64,000 nucleotides of DNA from Orbicella franksi (lineage: Eukaryota), in NCBI GenBank assembly GCA_964199315.1, contig OZ116700.1, forward strand, positions 9,300,001 to 9,364,000, in the 5' to 3' direction. Within the stretch, counting starts at the first letter, position 1; every line of letters starts with the position of its first letter. The translations under genes and the position numbers were made by a program. The notes under the pieces are model-generated. The model made no database searches. It was not told the DNA's origin and saw only the letters and a program-made list of their open reading frames with translations. Shown in pieces: positions 34,750-60,641 of this stretch.

Positions 34750-44595
<9,846 letters not shown>

Positions 44596-45027
44596 CTTGG
44601 CTTCGTGGATTACGCAATAGCATTTGGAACGAGGAGGAATGGGTACTTCTGTCCTGTCTGGGGGCCTTGGCACGAGGAAATTTTAAAGCTCTTGTAAAGG
44701 GAAAAACATGAGATATGGATTGATTGGCTAGATTCTTGGACTTGAAAAGAAGCGACTGTTTGATTTATTCGATTACAGCACCTACAGAGCTCAAGCCACA
44801 TACTCAAAAAGAGAACAGAATTCTGACCGGAACTGACATTTGCATTTTCGCTATAAGGTACTTTTTTTTTTTACTGTAAACTCTCCGTGCAAGCAACTTT
44901 TAGATCTCTTGAAGGTCTGTTGGTGATTTGGTCGAGCGGCTTTAGTTACAAATCAATTAGAGGGTATTCTCGGGAGGGAAAACAGCGTTAAAGATCTTAT
45001 TTTATAGTCCAAGCATGTAGAGCGCCT

Positions 45028-47515: not shown

Positions 47516-48622
47516 TTTAATAGAAATACGATTTTAAACATAGCAGCGTGCGTATTTTCTTTGGGCTATTTTCTAAATAAGTATATAGAGCGAGCTCTAT
47601 GACTCAGGTGTTAAGAACACTTACACACATCAACCACTCAAACTTTATTTGCAACTTACAAAACACTGAAATTTTCAGAGTGAACATGTTGAGTTTAAAT
47701 AAGAATACCATCTATTTCCTTACCAAGGTTAATCTTACTTATGATATAAAATAACCTTCACCTTGTTACCAAATGGATGGCGAAGCTATAATACTCGAAG
47801 TAACTTCTAAGTAGTCCTCGCGACGCTTAGAATAACATGTCCAAAATTGAAAACATCACGAAATCCCAAATATTTACCAACAAAAAACGCCTGACCCGAA
47901 AGTAATTCTCAAGGCTTTCATATAAATTCTCAATTACTTGGGTTTATATCTACAGACTTAAGAATTAGAACCGCTATGTAAAATTTACAGCATATAAAAC
48001 AAGAACAAATCAAAAGTACTGCTTAAAAGCTTTCGTTTGAATGCCTCCATATGTACTATGGTTTAATTCACAGCCTCAAAAGTTAGCACCACCCCGTGCG
48101 ACGTAACAAAAAGTACCACAAGAACGTTAACATCTGAATGGCTTTCTCTTAAACGGTTTCTTTTTAGAATTTTATCGTCAAACTTCAGGAAAATTAAAAC
48201 GAACCTTTGCAGTCGCAAAAACCACTCTGAGTTCAAGGCCACGCAGGCATTTTTCCCTCTCAAAGTGTGGCAGGTTTATTATTTTAGTTTCAAAATTCAA
48301 TACCGTTCTTATTTTACAATATAAATGACTGTAAATCACGTAAGAAGAATTCTAAAACCTATTGTTTACGTGCACCCTTTTTTATTCTACACATTTTATT
48401 CCACAAATCTAAAAGTGTTTTCTCAATTTCCACCATCCATTCGTATTTAATTAGCCAGATTAATTCCTTCTTCTAGATGAAATCAACTGAAGTGAAATTT
48501 CTAGTCCGCTACTAAACCATCCAAAACAGTTGCATTAATTTCCGCTATTTAAATTGCCTTTAGAGGCCAAATGTTCTATTTTACACCAGTGACGATTCAG
48601 TCACATTTTCGAAGCCGGAACT

Positions 48623-51600
48623 TTAGGAACGGCGTTGGACATCTTCTATTGCCTCTTTGAAAAGACGCAAGAACGTGTCAACATTTTCGGTGTACGAGTT
48701 ATGTCCCATGAATCCTACACGCCACACCTAAAGAATCAAAGGGAACGTTTTGGTTAAAGTTTAATACCTCCAGATTATTATATGGTTGTGTCTCACAAGG
48801 ACGGAAAACTACCGAATTCACATGTTTTTTGGCTGAAATCGACAATTACCGCGGTCTTGATTTTCCCATTTAGACCGACATCTAGACTGGTTTACATTTT
48901 GCGGTGAAAAAGTTGCAAACTAAGATATAACAATATTGACTAATTTCTTCTAAAAATATTAAAGGAAGTGCCAAATAGCCCGATGAGAAAAAAAGTAAAG
49001 AGGACGCGCAACTTTGGCAGATTTTGGTTTTAATAACTTTGCGTATTTTTACCGTTGAACCTAATATAACTGGAAACTCTAAGGAGCCGACTTACCTTTC
49101 CAACTGTAGGGCCCATACCACCAACAATTTCTAGCTTGTACCTAAAAGGCAAATAGACACAAACCACCTCTTTAACAAGGACTAAACTCAATTCATAAAT
49201 ATGAAGTGTACTGTGAAGTTATTGAAGTATAAAAAGAAAAAGAAAGAAAAAAAAAAACACCTCATTTTCTGCGATTCTCTACGCGATCCACTTATACTAT
49301 AATGTAAGAAGGGGTACATACTGGATAGCGGTAATTTTAGTTTAATTTTTCACGTGCTTTAGGGAGCTTTAAGGGCGAACGGCAAGCAAAGTTTGGAAAG
49401 CGATCGAGGTGAGTAGCATTTACTTTTTTTTCGGTGGGGTGGGTGGGGGGGGGGGGGAATACTGTGCGTATATACAGTAGAATCCTGATTTCTCGAACCC
49501 TCATTTTTTTGAACCTCCCAATAACTTGAACCAAAAGTCTTTCCCTCTCCTCAGTCAAACACTGTAATTTTACCCCCACTTTCTCGAGCTCTCCGATTTT
49601 TGGAATTAATTTTCGTTTTCCTTGGAGGTTCGAAAAATCGGGATTCCACTGTAATCAAAACAGCATGCATCTCATTGAATAACCTTAAGCTTATACTAGC
49701 AGTTTATGAGTTAAGCTTATGTCTCTATGATCTACCAAGGAAGGTGTTTATTTTACACATAGTTTATCTTGCTCACTTTTTCATAAGATATTCTGGGACA
49801 GCTTTCCAATCTGGAAATCCTTCTGGGATTTTAACACTTGTTACTGTTGGAAGACGATGAGCCTATAAAATAGGGAATTGATTAGAATTTGACAACAATT
49901 TAATAAAAAAAATATCTATGAGATTATCCATCCAATAACTATTCGAAATATGTCTTTGGGTATTTTCAGTAAACATCCATGCCTCCCCCACCAAAGAGAT
50001 TTTTTCCAACAGCCCCCCACCCCTCTGGAAATTCCAATTAAACTTAATACATGTCTTTAAATTTTCTGGTCTTAGAGAAGCCCCCATCCCCCAGGAAATT
50101 ATAATCCCTTCTGTGGGGGGAGTATGGATATTTTCTGGTGCTGCACATTATGAATTACCATAAATCCTTGAATTAAGTCCCCCCCCCCCCTCGAATAAGT
50201 GCCCCTCCTATTGGCCAAAATTTAAAACAAGCACCCCCTCCCTCCCCCCCCCCATTTTGTGGACGAGTAATGAGACAACAGAGGATGTATAGTTTTCGTC
50301 ATGTGGTATTAGATTTGTACATTGTTTCAGTTTGTGAACATGTTTAGTGAACATGTTGAACTTTAGGATCAGCTTTTTATGTGAATAAACAGCTTATGTT
50401 GGTGTTCACACGTAGGTGAGGTATTAGTAAGCACCCCCCTGAATAAGTACCCCCCCCTCGAATAAGCGCCCCCCCCGTCTTCTCCTAAATTTGAATTAAG
50501 CGCCCTGAGGAAGCGTACCCCTCAAGATTACATTAGTGAATTGATTATTTGAATATTGAACCTGCTAGTCAGTTCAAGAATGAAATAATGAATTGATTAT
50601 TGGAAAATTGAACTCACTAGTCGTTCCAAGAATACGGCTAATGGGTTTAATGTTCAAAAAATCAATTCAATATTTATTTTTGAAATGACTAGTAAGTTCA
50701 ATATTCAAATACAGTGAAACTCCACTCCATGGACACCCGCTTAATAAGGACACTCCCTTATGATGGACAGTTTTCTCTGTCCTGACAACTAAAATGGTCA
50801 TATATTTTCTCTTAAATTAGCCCACTTAATCCGGATAATGCAGACACCACTGCATGTCCCTTTGCTGTCCGTATTACTGGAGTTTCACTGTAATAAATTC
50901 ATTATTGAATTCTTGAAACGATTAGCAGGTTCAATATTCAAATAATCAATTCATTAAATGTAATCTTGAGGGGCACACTTCACTTGGTTTGACCACAACC
51001 TTGAAAGACTTTGAGAAAGTCTTAGATTAACCAATTGCCACCCTTACTAATTAAAAAGAAAGAAATGTCGAAGCATTTTTACCTTATCTTTAACAAACAT
51101 CTCCAGTCCCATCTTCTCAAGTCCAGCCCAGAGATGTTCAATGGTGTCATGATGTCTTTTCCAAGAATTCTCAAGTCCCTAATAAGAAGCAAAAACACTT
51201 AATATTAACAAATAGTTTGTATAATAATTCTCACTGACAATTTCACAACTGCATCGGGTATTTTTTATCCAATGTATGTTTTAATCAATTGATGAGGTTA
51301 ATTGAGTGCAAATAATTCAATCAGAACTGAAACTTTAAAAAACAAAACATTGATTTAAAGTATTTATTGTTAAGCTTGGTTTTGTTATAAACATTAAGGC
51401 AAGAAGACATCTCTTGTCCTGACTGAGTGGCTATCTGAAACATGCCAATTAAATTTCACACACTGCAAGTCCTGAACATCAATTCTGTACCTCTTCTGCA
51501 AGCAAAGCCAGGCTTTCTCTCAGTGCATAAACCAGATTAATTGCTGCAGTATGGTGGTACCTAAACACAAACAGCAAAAAGGAAATAAAAAGTTAAAAAC

Positions 51601-54600
51601 TTACCAAAGATACCTAACCAAATGTAAAAAATTGCTAAAAATGTCTCACCTTCTTGGGTCCTCATCACAGCCCCAGTAGTTCCCTAGTTCAATCATGTCC
51701 AAGTAAAATGATGGTACTTTAGTTCTCCGGCTGTTTATCTTAGCCCTAGAAGTGTTAACGCAGCAAAGTTAAGGACATTCACTTTAATTGTTTCTGCACA
51801 TCCTTACTGCGCACGCAAATTCGCACCCCACATCATGCATGAGCAAGTACACTAAGTTCTAAAATGAACCATGATACGGCAGATGGCCATTGCTATATAG
51901 CTAATGCCTGGATTTAATGATCTTGGATGTTCAGTAACCCTTATTTTCCTTTCCAGAAACAGATTTTATTTACAACTATCTCCACATTGTCCATGAATGA
52001 ACAAAAAAAATCACTGTGGGAAGTTAAAAAAATTTCAAGATTTCTGTCCACATTGAATCCTGCCATCTTGCAACTGCAAGGAGCCTGAAGCTACATGTAT
52101 GGTCGCTAAATGCGAATGTGTTCTTTAAGGAACCTCACCAGTTGACTAAATTCACTTAATAGGTCCACTTGAACAATATTTAGCAGAGAACATTTCACTT
52201 CAAAGTTCCAATTGCACTACTTTTGGCTTACAGACACTGTGGCCTTATTCGTTAATGAAACCAAAGTTTTTCAGATTTAGGATGTTCTTCCAGGCATGTT
52301 CTCTCCAAAACAAAGTCGGTGACCCCCCATTTTCTTACATTTCATTTTCTGACATAAATAACTCACCATCTTACAGTGGTAAAAGTCTAAGAAAAAAATC
52401 AAAGTTGGAAAATTTTCGCACGTACGTCCTTATAAATCTTCACTTGGCTCCCTTGGCTCCCTTATAATTTAACCCGCTGACTTAGATGCTAACCATTGGG
52501 GCAATGCTTTGCAGATCATTCCTAATATCCCTTCTTTTTAGATTGTGAACTCTCGGCCAGCTTTATTCATGAGGCTTTGCAGGATGATTTTTGCCAAGAG
52601 ATAAGATCATGAGATTTACAATTTAGCTACATGTAAATCTTAGTGACTCTCATTCAAAATAACTGAGATAATAATTGGAGATGTGTATACCTGGTGACCC
52701 AGATAATTTAGTTGTGGCCGTTAAAGCAGCAGACTAGAATTCTTACCAAGGCAATAACAGAAAAAGATGCATCTTATATTGCATACAGATTTATTTTTTT
52801 TCTCAATGCCTGGCCACTGTCAGGAACTCAAAAGAGATATTAAATAAATTCAAAGTTTTTACCAAGGTAAGTGCCTCTGTTAGCCTGTTACTAGCTACAG
52901 CTATGGCCCTGTTATACTCACATGGCTCTGGGGCTGAATGTAATTGGTGCGATTCCAGGAGGTGAGCCAAGACACTTTTGGGAGCCTGAGTAGACACAGT
53001 CCAGGTCCCAGTCATCAGTGAGGAAAGGTGTTCCACCAAGGGAAGCAACAGTGTCCACAATTATTAAGCAATTATGCCTGTAATTGAGAAAATTTTAAGT
53101 TGAGTCCTTACATAGAAAACTGAACAACCAAATTAAAAGTTATGACCAAGGGTACATGACCATACTAACTGATAAAATTTTAATTTTTTTCATTCTTAAT
53201 CTCTAAATTTAGCTTTCATCTTAACTTAGAAGTCTAAACTGGCAGGAGATTCCCTCTCAGTTAGAAATTTAATTATGACAGTGAAATGTTTATTCAAAAA
53301 GTTACAATTCATAAATATAATTGCTGTCAATTTTTCCTCATTACACTCACTTGTGGCATAAAGCTCCAAGGTCATCCATTGGTTGACATATTCCTGAAGA
53401 AGACTCACTGTGAACGATGAAAAGCACTGACGGCTTGTGTTCTTTGAGACTCTTAAAAAAAATAAAATATAATGTTAATAACTAATCAAAACCTAAATAA
53501 TGAATAAATGAATGTATGACTGGGTAGTAAATCAAGTGGTGGTGAATGGTTCCCAGAAAGTTCCCTGGAAATTTTGCCGCAGATCTCAAAAATCTTGGTT
53601 TCCTTTCTGATGAGTCTGAAGGCATTGTTTTTCTGTGTTTTTTTTCAGTCTCTGAGTCTAAGATCATCATTTAGTTAAGTGTCATTCACAGATTTTAAAA
53701 TAAGTGTGTTGGTATCTTGTTTTGCCAACTGTCACCATTGATCAATCAAAATTAACATTAACAAGTCATAAATTCTTTAGAAGTTTTAAAACATTTTAGG
53801 TTAGATCTGGCTCTGCTTTCAATGAAAAAGAAACTAATAGACAGGAAATTTCTTATTCTATTAATATTATTGAAAGTTGCTAAAAATCATCAGCATTCGG
53901 ATGAACTGTTTGACCAATTGTATCGATTTTGCTAACTGATCTGGATCGTGCAGAAAACTGAAAAATAGTCAAAAAAATGAAATTTCACCTGTTCAATTTC
54001 ATCACGAGTGTAGTATTCTCCGGGTGACTTTTCAAGGACTCGTACATCACATCCTTTTGAAGGAAACACATGTTGCACCAAATTAAAAACATTGATCATT
54101 CATGGCAGAAGTGATTTACTATGAATGCCCAAAAACTTGCAATGTGTTGTTTTGGAAAAAATCCATACCCCCTCCCTTAGATTAGGGCTTTTTGCTTTGA
54201 GCCCCTCATCCATCTGAAAATTCCAGTTTTGATTCATACTTTTGTTTGAAAATTTCTAACAACCCTCCTTGGGATGGGTATGGATATTTTCTGGAACCAT
54301 ACATTTAAAAGCAAATGCTGTTTATAGATTCCCAGTTAGTTTCTTTCTTTTTAAACTGTAACCCTTAAAAAGTTTGTTTATAAAAAAAAAAAAAGGAAAC
54401 AAAAGACTGCCTACTGCATATCTTAATTTTGTTTTCAGTCAGAAAAATAATGAACTCCTCTCATCAGCCAACCTTGTTTATGGTCTGATTATGTGAAAGA
54501 TAATAAAATTATTACAAATAATTCTCAAAAATTATGAAATAATAATGGCTCTGGCAAAAAAACAGTTGTTGTTATTAAATAAAGTATTTGACAAAAGTTT

Positions 54601-55583
54601 CTGAGAAAGTTTGGTGTTACCATAGAAATGCAATGGAGATCCCCTTCACCCACGGATGTAGGGTAGGAGGGAAACTTGATTGCTTTATAACGATTTATCA
54701 TTAACTGTGCAGTTTATAATTTCTCCGTGGGGCGCTTGTTGATGTTTCGCTAGGCTGAGAGCGCTCGTCCCCTCGAATGTATTAAACGTGAAACGTGTCA
54801 TCGCTAGTAGTGCAATAGGAATCTGACAGTGGAGAGGACTTCAGGATGTAGTGTACGATGTTATGTATAGTACAAAGTTCGAAAGAAAAAGAAACTTTGG
54901 ATAATTTCCATTGTAATTGTTTGCGCATCTGGAAATGTGCATTCAGGTTGGGGAGATCGCGCGCCAAAGTATCCAGACTACGGGATGACGCTAGTGTGTA
55001 AATTTGGCACGTTGACAGCCATTCATGAGCAATCTTTAAAATTTAGAAGAAATATGCAAGGACTTCACAGAATATCATGGATGAATTCACGTTAAAAGTG
55101 CCATTTTCATGCTGATTTCTGATTCTTACCTTGCCGCTCGGCAATTTCGCGAGCCCTCGAACCCCACATTCCATTAACACACACTAGAATGCGTTCTCCT
55201 CGTTCGACAAGGTTCATGATCGAAGCTTCCATCGCCGCATGTCCCGCTCCAGTGATAGCGAGAGTGTAGTCGTTATTCGTCTGAAACACGTACTTCAGAC
55301 CTGCCTTCGTTTCGTCCATTATGTGATGAAAATCCGCCTGCAGATGGCCCAGAAGCGACATCGCAGAAGCGTTGTATATCCTCATCGATGGATTCGAAGG
55401 GCCAGGCCCAAAAAGAAGCTTCGTGGGCACTGTCAGAGGCACCAGCAATTCTTCCGGTGGTGGAACTTTCGGTTTCCATTCCTCTGCCAACTTGGCTGTG
55501 GCTGTCGAAAGCGCCCTTAATTCGAATCGGAGAGGCCCTCGAGCCGCAACTCCAAAAAGTCTAGCAAATTTCGTAAGGCTCAT
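48623..55583 (-). CDS. AGXT: Alanine-glyoxylate/serine-pyruvate aminotransferase, paralog M (predicted mitochondrial), 424 aa. Exons 55583-55130, 54053-53989, 53451-53351, 53077-52922, 51745-51650, 51560-51491, 51178-51083, 49862-49777, 49141-49096, 48727-48623
   Basis: Ten GT-AG exons (454, 65, 101, 156, 96, 70, 96, 86, 46, 105 nt), same intron positions as paralog P, continuous 1275-nt frame, SGSQKC PLP lysine. N-terminal [33 protein letters not shown]; ends ...EDVQRRS*. Confidence 0.95.
49475..49651. mobile_element. pogo/Tigger-like MITE, TA target duplication
   Basis: ta|cagtagaatcctgatt ... aatcgggattccactg|ta. Confidence 0.8.
50510..50981. mobile_element. TIR element carrying a nested pogo-like MITE at 50712-50890
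   Basis: Outer arms gaagcgtacccctcaagattacat and atgtaatcttgaggggcacacttc. Inner ta|cagtgaaactcc...ggagtttcactg|ta. Confidence 0.75.
51773..52429. mobile_element. Kolobok-like non-autonomous element, ~25 bp from the AGXT-M exon-5 acceptor
   Basis: ttaa|ggacattc ... gtacgtcc|ttat (degenerate TSD). Confidence 0.55.
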
Positions 55584-58175: not shown

Positions 58176-60641
58176 TCAATTCTTGATTGGAGTAACATCA
58201 ATGAAGATGCTACTGCTTACACATGATGCTGAAATTAGAAGTTCTTGACCAGCTTCTACAGTTACTTCCTCTTTCAACATGATGACAGCTTGTCTCCAGT
58301 GCGATTCAGCGTAAGCCCCACCATGTGTTGACAGTGAGTGGTGATTGTCAAGATGTAACATAAACCAGTATGGAATAGCATGTATCCTCCCAGAATTTGT
58401 AGCTTTGACTCTTTGCTGAGAGTGAGTTTCAAGTAAGGAGAGCACCTTGTTTTCATCATCAAACTGCTCCATGAAATTCAGACTGAAAAGAGCAACATGG
58501 TCTGTGATTGCTGAGAAAGGAAGTGTTGTAAGGTCCACATCTATGTGAGTTGTTACTTGAAACTCATTGATAAACTGTGCGATGTTGAGTCCAAGTGTAT
58601 TGTCTTGGCTCACAATGCGACAGTTAGCAAACAAGAAGGGCGATTCAATACACATGCAGTACAAAGTGAATCCCATAGGAATAATCTGGAAACTCTGTGG
58701 TCTCAGTAAACATCCTCGAGCAAACACAATATCTTCAACAACTTGTTGGCGAATGATTCCCGACGGTTCCACTGTGTCACTGACAAGAATATCCCACTTC
58801 CTTCCTTCTTTGGCAATTTCTTCAAGTTTACTTGGACTACTTTCAATGACTGGTGGTAGATTGTTTCCATGCAAAATGCATTTTATCCATGCAGCATTGT
58901 GAGGATTTGTCACTAGGACATGACCAGCTTTGCCTCGAGAAGCAAAAAGAGAAGACAGAGCGGGACCGTAGGTGATGTCAATAATGTTACCGGTAGGTTT
59001 CCCGCTGGCGTTGTCATTATTAGCAGATGCATGTAGACCAGGTGTCACAGACTTCACAGCTCTACAGATAACTTCATCATAGAGGTCATTAAAGGCATTG
59101 TCATTCAGTCTTCGCATGTAAGAAGGTGGAATGATTATAACTTCACTGTTACGCTCATTGTTTTTAGTCAAAGAGCTGTTCCTTGTGGAGGCAATTTCTT
59201 TGTGTGCTAGTGTACATGTAACACTGTTACGAGATTCATTACCTGTTGTTGTTTTAATGTCACTTAAATGTAACTTCAAACATTCTTGGGAGAGTTCTCC
59301 ATGAATGGACATCAAGTCTCCCATTGAAACTTCCAGTTTACCAGACAAATTTCCAGCACTTGAGTAAACAGGGAAAATTGCCTGCTCCCAACAGAGAGAG
59401 TCATCATTGGGGCCAGTGGAAAGAGTAATTTCTTCATCCAGTCGCAAATCAAACCATGCTGATATAGCATCCACCCGACCATCACAGGTTGCAGGGATTT
59501 CAAAACTTATGTTTCTCTCCTTATTCAAGCTACTTGGATTGTTGAAATCATACTCTGTAACTTTGAAAGGGCATGACAGAGCTTTGAAACCACCTCTAAG
59601 CCTGTTCAAGCATTCTGTGTTGTACGGTTCCAACTGATCTAGAATACTTCCAGACGATGCCATTTCTGACTTTTGTGCCATTAGTTCTGCTCCTATGCTA
59701 CACTCAGGAAACATGTTCATTCCATTAATTATTGGTTTGCTCCTGGTTTGATGTCTGATGTCATAACACATAATTGCCATAGCATAAACAACTGCACCAC
59801 CTGGTATGACCTTTGAAACAGGCTTTGCATTTGAGTGGTGCAAGTCATCTGTGGAAGGCATAAGCAGGTTAGCCCAGGCATGTTCCACAGTGGCAAGAAT
59901 TCCTTCACCGAGAAGTCCACAATCTAATGTCTCGGTTACAACAAGAGAAACCTGCTGTGGAATATCGTCACCTACTTTCATCTCAGTTGATTTCTTGTGT
60001 ATGGTGTGGACTAACTTCTCCATTTTATTTGCTTTCAACACATCCAGACCCATTTCATACATGGTCTTAGACATTTCACAAGCATAGACCTCTTTTGCCC
60101 CGCTCTGAACAGCAAACATACTTAAAATTCCAGTGCCGCTTCCAATGTCTAAAACGACATCGTGCCCTTGGCTTATGGCCTTAGCAATTGCCTGCTTGTA
60201 AGCCAAGTTCCTTTTCTTGTCATTTAACATTCTAAAATGCCATCTCTCGACCAACAGATTTGCGACGTTTTCAAGATTTTCTTTCGCTCTGATACTCCCA
60301 GGATTGACTTGCAACGCACGTCTAAAACACGACGCAGCTTCGTCGGTGATTCCGGCCTTGATCAAGCTTGCACCCGTGTTTACGAGTATGTTTTCGCTTC
60401 GTGGGTAGAGCTTCAAGGCTTCCTGCAGGCAAACCATCAGTTTATCTAGCTCGCCATGACGTTCAAGTATATCGGTCCAGTGGCGCAAAGCGATGATGAA
60501 GTCTTCCTCTAACACTTCTTTTGAGGAAGGTTCCACATTGGCGAGAAACACCAAATGCGCCAACGCATCTCCATACCTTTCGCGTCTGAGGCAGTTCTTG
60601 GCAGCTTGAAAATGCTGAAAATAACGCGAGTTCGCTTCCAT
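58176..60641 (-). CDS. PRMT9: Protein arginine N-methyltransferase 9, single coding exon, 821 aa
   Basis: N-terminal TPRs (EAASCFRRALQVNPGS..AKENL), LVERWHFRMLND, motif I VLDIGSGTGILS, double-E loop VTETLDCGLLGEG, CWEQA in place of THW, and a degenerate second methyltransferase module ending HWRQA. Confidence 0.93.
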   Translation of the reverse strand: MEANSRYFQHFQAAKNCLRRERYGDALAHLVFLANVEPSSKEVLEEDFIIALRHWTDILERHGELDKLMVCLQEALKLYPRSENILVNTGASLIKAGITDEAASCFRRALQVNPGSIRAKENLENVANLLVERWHFRMLNDKKRNLAYKQAIAKAISQGHDVVLDIGSGTGILSMFAVQSGAKEVYACEMSKTMYEMGLDVLKANKMEKLVHTIHKKSTEMKVGDDIPQQVSLVVTETLDCGLLGEGILATVEHAWANLLMPSTDDLHHSNAKPVSKVIPGGAVVYAMAIMCYDIRHQTRSKPIINGMNMFPECSIGAELMAQKSEMASSGSILDQLEPYNTECLNRLRGGFKALSCPFKVTEYDFNNPSSLNKERNISFEIPATCDGRVDAISAWFDLRLDEEITLSTGPNDDSLCWEQAIFPVYSSAGNLSGKLEVSMGDLMSIHGELSQECLKLHLSDIKTTTGNESRNSVTCTLAHKEIASTRNSSLTKNNERNSEVIIIPPSYMRRLNDNAFNDLYDEVICRAVKSVTPGLHASANNDNASGKPTGNIIDITYGPALSSLFASRGKAGHVLVTNPHNAAWIKCILHGNNLPPVIESSPSKLEEIAKEGRKWDILVSDTVEPSGIIRQQVVEDIVFARGCLLRPQSFQIIPMGFTLYCMCIESPFLFANCRIVSQDNTLGLNIAQFINEFQVTTHIDVDLTTLPFSAITDHVALFSLNFMEQFDDENKVLSLLETHSQQRVKATNSGRIHAIPYWFMLHLDNHHSLSTHGGAYAESHWRQAVIMLKEEVTVEAGQELLISASCVSSSIFIDVTPIKN

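Follow-up and report, generated by a model that had tools for sequence, protein, structure and literature searches.

A 64,000-nt stretch of the Orbicella franksi genome (contig OZ116700.1, positions 9,300,001 to 9,364,000; the whole stretch is called the window below) contains two tandem AGXT genes, M and P, both on the minus strand and each with 10 coding exons. Sequence comparisons support the view that the 3' untranslated region (3'UTR) of M opens with what is left of a C-terminal tripeptide of the peroxisome type, now disabled, which would have been cut off from the reading frame by a +2 frameshift. In the explanation that we favor, with a probability of roughly 0.85, these remains are a molecular fossil: dead codons for a C-terminal K-S-Q-L, left behind by a frameshift in M after the tandem duplication.

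The relic behind the stop codon of M

The features on which the comparison of the two genes is based are as follows.

48609 to 48623, minus strand: relic codons AAG TTC CGG CTT CGA (formerly K-S-Q-L-stop), now untranslated
48623 to 48625, minus strand: stop codon TAA of M, created by the frameshift (gene model)
48625 to 48629, minus strand: zone of the extra bases relative to ancestral CGY CCA AAG (alignments)
48623 to 48727, minus strand: last coding exon of M (exon 10), 105 nt including the stop codon, placed by its AG acceptor and the reading frame
48000 to 48622, minus strand: minimum extent of the 3'UTR of M, with no splicing across the relic in a contig of run X7
48623 to 55583, minus strand: coding span of M, 10 exons, 424 amino acids
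34750 to 34764, minus strand: terminal codons of P, AAG TCC CAG CTT TGA (K-S-Q-L-stop; gene model)
34750 to 44595, minus strand: coding span of P, 10 exons, 396 amino acids, no presequence

Gene models built from splice sites gave the same exon phases for M and P, with GT-AG introns. The coding sequence of M ended in CAA CGC CGT TCC TAA (protein ..EDVQRRS) and that of P in GGC CTT CCA AAG TCC CAG CTT TGA (protein ..PKSQL), and the first A of the relic was at the same time the last base of the TAA of M. The strings that the preliminary description of this DNA had quoted for the two gene ends were present exactly, at 48609-48634 in M and 34750-34765 in P, both on the minus strand. Its proposal that two single-base insertions align M with P was reproduced by global alignment (match +1, mismatch -1, gap open -2), for which the sole optimum printed had 23 identities in 28 positions. 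Pairwise MAFFT favored one 2-base gap, and the net shift of M was +2 under either alignment. The two extra bases were the T at 48625 and, within the TT at 48628-48629, one of the two T's, the exact bases being alignment-dependent. The shifted frame and the early TAA with codons stranded behind it, as first described, were seen in the gene models, in the alignments, and in orthologues. A multi-sequence MAFFT alignment of the C-terminal DNA, with a single 1-base gap, fitted the window pair poorly and was rejected as a compromise artefact.

The relic was identical to the P codons AAG TCC CAG CTT TGA at 12 of 15 positions and lay at the expected place. Shuffled M 3'UTR reached 12/15 in 31 of 300,000 trials over 15 offsets (p ~1e-4). 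When the whole window was scanned on both strands (128,000 positions), three 15-mers were found at 12/15, namely P, the relic, and one unrelated site. The homology extended on both sides: the blastn alignment of the two last exons crossed the stop codon of M and ended 4 bases beyond that of P (M 48729-48605, P 34868-34746, 80.8% identity), and 5 of the 6 bases that follow the P stop matched between M and P. The introns of M and P did not align with blastn. The string behind the stop of M therefore combines positional homology to coding sequence with a disrupted frame and, as described below, a neutral-like rate of change.

Read and transcript support

The preliminary description had asked whether the indels might be assembly errors. 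Contigs of run X2, which belongs to another study, and of runs X3 (organism B) and X7 (organism C) covered 48000-48729 or more with 0 gaps and carried no substitution inside 48609-48640. The indels of M were thereby confirmed in three other runs under two other species labels, and are not assembly errors. A JGI metagenome contig (L023), 98.7% identical, contained the same relic string. The exon 9/10 junction, joining 49096 to 48727, was seen in an X7 contig, and a 1011-nt X7 contig was gap-free over 48000-48729 and ran on into upstream exons. The relic is transcribed as part of the 3'UTR. Raw RNA reads of X23 numbered 6 on the stretch, too few to define the 3' end.

The only coding differences in the last exon of M among close relatives were T>C at 48647 (Ile>Met) in organism B and A>C at 48680 in organisms B and C. 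The last intron of M contained a high-copy repeat (48748-49011), over which the summed contig depth of run X3 rose from ~100 to >50,000 with many loose ends.

Polarity of the change and ancestral state

Coral genomic loci (L numbers) were found via exon-1 read-through open reading frames (ORFs) in public coral assemblies. A 50%-identity representative search yielded chiefly read-through fragments of exon 1, whose sole use was to lead to contigs. For orthologues beyond the window, the gene models consist of tblastn segments with uncurated splicing. P0285 came with no DNA, and L011, L013, and L017 end before the last exon, which leaves the C-terminal comparison to the other loci. When full-length cnidarian AGXT was sought with a profile that combined coral exons with a whale backbone, mammals filled the list and no cnidarian was in it. 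A MAFFT alignment that included short exon fragments was set aside, as the fragments were scattered.

A PRMT-like gene, an intronless ORF of 821 amino acids (58176-60641, minus strand) with TPR domains and methyltransferase domains of the PRMT type (PrmA, PRMT_C), was the immediate upstream neighbor of AGXT in L001, L002, L007, L012, L013, L017, and L018 as well as in the window. The conserved gene order serves as the anchor for the orthology of the M-side locus. In L018, a distant syntenic AGXT, exons 9 and 10 were fused (L018:19740-19886).

AGXT genes with the KSQL tail were found outside the P type. L012, which directly follows the same PRMT-like gene, has both presequence and internal Met, and its protein terminates in ..AGRPKSQL (AAG TCT CAG CTT TAA). 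A spliced L012-type transcript, L020, ends in the same way. The more distant L007 combines PRMT synteny, presequence, and internal Met with the end ..HGRAKSQL (AAG TCC CAG CTA TGA). Protein trees placed L007 outside all coral copies, as their sister (95-98% support), with L018 more distant still. The KSQL codons in L007, L012, and L020 show that KSQL predates M: M lost the tail, and P did not gain it. Among the P-type genes of other corals, L008 ends ..NRPKSQI, and exon 10a of L021 and L022 ends ..GRPKSQL.

The ancestral tripeptide had been proposed to be SRL or SQL. SQL stood, with CAG present in every tail-keeping gene, and SRL was discarded: tail-keepers all have CAG, the frameshifted L010 and L014 keep CCCAG, and CGG occurs only in the family of the window species. 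Because CAG is kept in a frameshifted M (L010), the A>G change to CGG came after the loss, and M would never have encoded SRL. The identification of the first inserted base as G also has to be revised, since the P exon 10a of a sister genus reads CGT CCA AAG and the G is therefore ancestral. CTT in the window P reflects a later G>T change relative to that exon. On the simplest account the first extra base is a T, which would give CGT[T]CC[T]AAAG with two added T's.

Timing of the loss and decay of the relic

Seven M orthologues (L001, L010, L014, L019, L025, L026, and L028) aligned to the window M without gaps across the stop codon. They ended ..KNRS-TGA (L010, L014), ..KNS-TAA-TGA (L001), or ..QRRY-TAA/TAG (L019, L025, L026, L028), and the stop (TAA, TAG, or TGA) occupied the same codon position in all M orthologues. 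The shared stop position and the gap-free alignment indicate a single origin of the +2 shift, in the ancestor that all members of the M clade share. Loss of the tail is thus old and not species-specific; it precedes the split of all sampled M orthologues and probably dates from soon after the duplication.

Within the family to which the window species belongs, the relic reads GAG TTC TGG CCT CGA in L028, AAG ACC CGA CTT CGA in L025, and AAG ACC CGA CAT CGA in L019. The ancestral bases retained differ by lineage, L019 and L025 having C at position 5 and L010 and L014 keeping AAG-CCCAG, and together they point back to AAG TCC CAG CTT TGA. In the window lineage, M has changed at 3 of the 15 bases of the relic, including CAG>CGG and TGA>CGA.

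Divergence at fourfold sites was 0.53 between M and P and 0.57-0.70 among M orthologues. These values (~0.26-0.35 per branch) predict a neutral identity to the ancestor of 75-78%, and the relic was at 80%. The flanking 3'UTR was 76-83% identical between the window and species of the same family, and the relic, differing at 3/15 from both L028 and L025, changed no more slowly than these flanks. Against L010, L014, and L001, the introns and most of the UTR of the window M were unalignable. The relic thus decays at the neutral 3'UTR rate, and nothing points to constraint.

Putative targeting signals of M and P

Three further features concern the N-terminal ends of the two proteins.

55488 to 55583, minus strand: presequence of M, 32 codons, ~31 residues beyond the start of solved AGT chains
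55488 to 55490, minus strand: Leu32 of M (TTG), where P and single-gene relatives have Met
44596 to 44670 (approximate), minus strand: presequence relic upstream of the ATG of P (alignment)

P starts with MAEWKTK, and M is longer by 32 N-terminal residues. This extension contains 6 K/R vs 1 D/E, has a helical hydrophobic moment of 0.65-0.72 (<=0.53 in windows of the mature protein), and is conserved in 12 species, with K5, R8, and R23 invariant. As a basic, amphipathic extension it has the features of a mitochondrial matrix presequence, which would direct M to mitochondria and make it the putative mitochondrial enzyme. The internal position following the presequence was Leu in 4/4 M-clade sequences and Met in 8/8 single-gene-type sequences, and in the latter relatives this Met could start a presequence-less isoform.

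The region upstream of the P ATG was homologous to the 3' half of the presequence. In the window, 15 nt are missing from it by comparison with the P-type genes of other corals, and there is no ATG in frame upstream. The P-type genes at L014:10001-10140 and L008:10001-10145 keep an in-frame extension with upstream ATGs (..RYVAMIRALSSTAN-MAEW), which runs up to the P-type Met as ..RALSSTAN-MAEW in L014 and ..FSLGAK-MAEW in L008. The P-type gene of L014 lies 2.4 kb downstream of its M orthologue, and this gene order indicates that the tandem M-P arrangement is shared with another coral. Intron 1 of the same P-type gene contains a retrotransposon ORF of 1158 amino acids (RVT_1, RT_RNaseH) on the opposite strand (L014:11949-15425). 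Three matching relics can be proposed: the dead KSQL behind the stop of M, the Met>Leu change in M, and the decayed presequence upstream of P.

At the C-terminus, the R-R-S of M is no peroxisomal targeting signal type 1 (PTS1). SQL replacing KKL on human AGT still permits peroxisomal import, and SQL is the natural AGT terminus in another mammalian species (PMC2120593). In coral lineages and L007, which are saturated at silent sites, K-S-Q-L/I has been conserved as the very last residues of the protein, and such conservation fits a function for the tail. KSQL would be expected to direct P to peroxisomes. The statement that M lost peroxisomal targeting holds for the KSQL tail itself, as given by the polarity of the sequences, and is probable for the targeting role.

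Readthrough and frameshift products of M, which the preliminary description had suggested looking for, were derived by translating the reading frames, and neither would restore a PTS1. Readthrough of the TAA would give ..SSGFENVTESSLV-stop, and the relic frame gives ..KFRLRKCD-stop, running past the old end because TGA is now CGA.

Assignment of M and P to the AGXT family

In the 497-Mb assembly, AGXT exon 1 was present in 2 copies only, those of M and P. Exon 1 of M matched mouse and human AGT chains with E values of 8e-35 to 1e-32; for exons of the two genes the values were about 1e-33 to 1e-35. PF00266 (class-V aminotransferase) was matched by exon pieces at 17-20.8 bits each; the whole-protein cut-off is 21.5 bits, and the pieces fall just below it, each being one exon. 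Exon-wise identity to whale AGXT was 29-61%, with 52-61% in the well-aligned exons 1-5. The S-G-S-Q-K motif with the pyridoxal-phosphate-binding lysine was found in both proteins (YSGSQKCLG in M and P, aligned to YSGSQKVLN of the vertebrate AGT P0022). On the basis of the fold-wide homology and this lysine, M and P are assigned to the AGXT / class-V aminotransferase family.

Apparent terminal-exon replacement in a related coral

In one related coral, the P-type gene was examined in L021:1-3753 (ENA OMLO01038197.1), L022:1-3051 (JGI Ga0099814_1096334), and L027:1-1145 (Ga0099814_1152726), together with L028. Its KSQL-encoding exon 10a has AC in place of the AG acceptor. L021 (genomic) and L022 (a partly spliced transcript) are independent contigs, and both read TTAC immediately before GTATGG. 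About 728 nt downstream of exon 10a lies a ~97% identical copy of the last exon of that species' M, designated exon 10b, which bears the same dead KSQL codons as the M exon. The transcript contig L027 splices P-type exons 1-9 straight to exon 10b. It looks as if P of this coral lost its PTS1 in a second, independent way, by terminal-exon replacement.

Proposed course of events

The ancestral coral AGXT would have been a single gene adjoining the PRMT-like gene, and its protein would have carried a mitochondrial presequence, an internal Met, and a tail ..R-P-K-S-Q-L acting as a non-canonical PTS1. After tandem duplication, the upstream copy M would have gained two bases just before the K-S-Q-L codons. 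The resulting shift of frame would have led to an immediate stop (..R-S-stop), turning the old codons into the first 15 bases of the 3'UTR, where they would have drifted neutrally as a functionless relic. M would also have changed its internal Met to Leu. The downstream copy P would have retained KSQL; its presequence would have been lost in this species.

Alternative explanations

Several results weigh against this course of events. The S-Q-L of P breaks the canonical PTS1 rule ([SAC][KRH][LM]) through its Q at -2, and SQL is a weak PTS1 in zebrafish Crot (PMC8919083); a literature search on cnidarian AGXT targeting found no paper and no localisation data. A PTS1-type tail in outgroups had been named as a check, and the outcome was divided: L007, L012, and L020 end in KSQL, but the more distant, syntenic L018 ends ..LRGY, without a PTS1-like tail, so that KSQL is assigned only to the node of L007 plus corals and not to all cnidarians. 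Taken alone, the relic did not reach significance in L010/L014 (p 0.16) or in L001 (p 0.75). Topology tests of the M, P, and single-gene clades rejected none of three resolutions (p-AU 0.24-0.36, or 67% support), and the single-gene species may either predate the duplication or have arisen by later loss or fusion. The off-consensus SQL and the empty literature search would fit the explanation that the relic is real but KSQL is no peroxisomal signal in corals, the tail having been conserved for some other reason and its loss having left the compartment of M unaffected, as would the apparent loss of KSQL from the P-type gene of the related coral described above. We regard this as unlikely, because the tail sits at the extreme C-terminus, as a PTS1 does, has a basic residue at -4, was kept as K-S-Q-L/I in deeply diverged lineages, and ends in a tripeptide that is natural on a mammalian AGT and supports import of the human enzyme. 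Reversed polarity, in which the short ..RRS end would be ancestral and a 2-base deletion would have brought 3'UTR into frame to give the KSQL of P, draws on the fact that insertion and deletion are indistinguishable from two sequences, and on the short end of L018. It is very improbable given that L007, L012, and L020, none of them P-type, have KSQL in the frame of P with near-identical codons, that L007 and L012 also show presequence and PRMT synteny, that L007 branches outside all coral copies, and that vertebrate AGTs, too, end in a PTS1-type tripeptide (e.g., ..NKL in P0022).

The resemblance between the two 3' ends might also stem from gene conversion, with a short patch from P refreshing the 3' end of M in this lineage. 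The window M does match the window P better than L010 or L001 match the ancestral codons, and at synonymous sites M and P have diverged no further than M orthologues have from one another. Against this, L028, L019, and L025 have the same relic at the same offset with changes of their own, the M-specific CGG and CGA are common to that family and absent from P, and the coding part of the M exon groups with M orthologues and not with P, all of which makes conversion very unlikely. That the relic lies within a transcribed 3'UTR would suit continued use, i.e., a minor PTS1-bearing isoform of M produced by readthrough, frameshifting, or alternative splicing; yet neither the readthrough nor the relic-frame product ends in a PTS1, the relic changes as fast as the neighboring UTR, and the transcript contig is unspliced across it, so that such use is highly improbable. 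Single-base indels are a common long-read error, but the gap-free contigs of three other runs and the same string in L023, together with the shuffling result for chance resemblance (p ~1e-4), reduce the likelihood of an artefact or a coincidence to almost nothing. A molecular fossil left by the frameshift in M remains the best explanation.

Discussion

The textbook example of evolutionary re-targeting between mitochondria and peroxisomes is AGXT, whose product causes primary hyperoxaluria type 1 when it is mistargeted. In mammals, one gene encodes a mitochondrial targeting sequence (MTS) at the N-terminus, an internal start, and a C-terminal PTS1, and individual lineages lose or weaken one of these signals. 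The coral system involves the same enzyme, the same competing signals, and the same protein ends, and the single-gene corals L012 and L007 are laid out as in mammals, with a presequence, an internal Met, and a tripeptide at the end. Some mammals retain dead MTS codons upstream of the start codon, the mirror image of the coral 3'UTR relic. Unlike in mammals, the two destinations would be split in the coral between tandem genes and not regulated within one, and the loss, in a cnidarian lineage, concerns the PTS1, proceeded by frameshift, and left its remains in the 3'UTR. The shifts of mammalian AGT targeting between mitochondria and peroxisomes have been documented (PMC2120593; PMC12960970) and are an active topic (PMC12960970).

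In the zebrafish pair, agxta has a weak PTS1 (SRV) and no MTS, and agxtb has an MTS and no PTS1 (PMC8919083). This is the same division of labor as that proposed for P and M. The zebrafish pair differs in originating from an independent teleost duplication, for which no lost-signal relic is described; the two coral genes have stayed side by side, and related species still show intermediate states. Duplication-degeneration-complementation (subfunctionalisation) of dual-targeted proteins has been formulated as a general model (PMC3798809, PMC4678951). The complementary losses in the coral, of PTS1 and internal Met in M and of the presequence in P, agree with that model, and the coral offers one concrete case of it with readable remains.

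The M-P pair represents an independent cnidarian case with a legible lost signal, a clean example rather than a new principle. The story of AGXT re-targeting has so far been based on vertebrates, and the relic provides base-level evidence of direction in a cnidarian. Since the dual-signal ancestral state appears to be alive in related corals, these animals would offer a natural experiment on competing N- and C-terminal signals. We suggest tentatively, at somewhat less than even odds, that corals keep a stepwise record leading from a dual-targeted single gene through duplicates with three relics to a second loss of KSQL, in P. Such a record, if true, would suggest repeated selection on the compartment of AGXT in a photosymbiotic animal, perhaps tied to the glycolate/glyoxylate load from the algae. 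The finding thereby raises the question of compartment-specific selection on glyoxylate handling in symbiotic corals.

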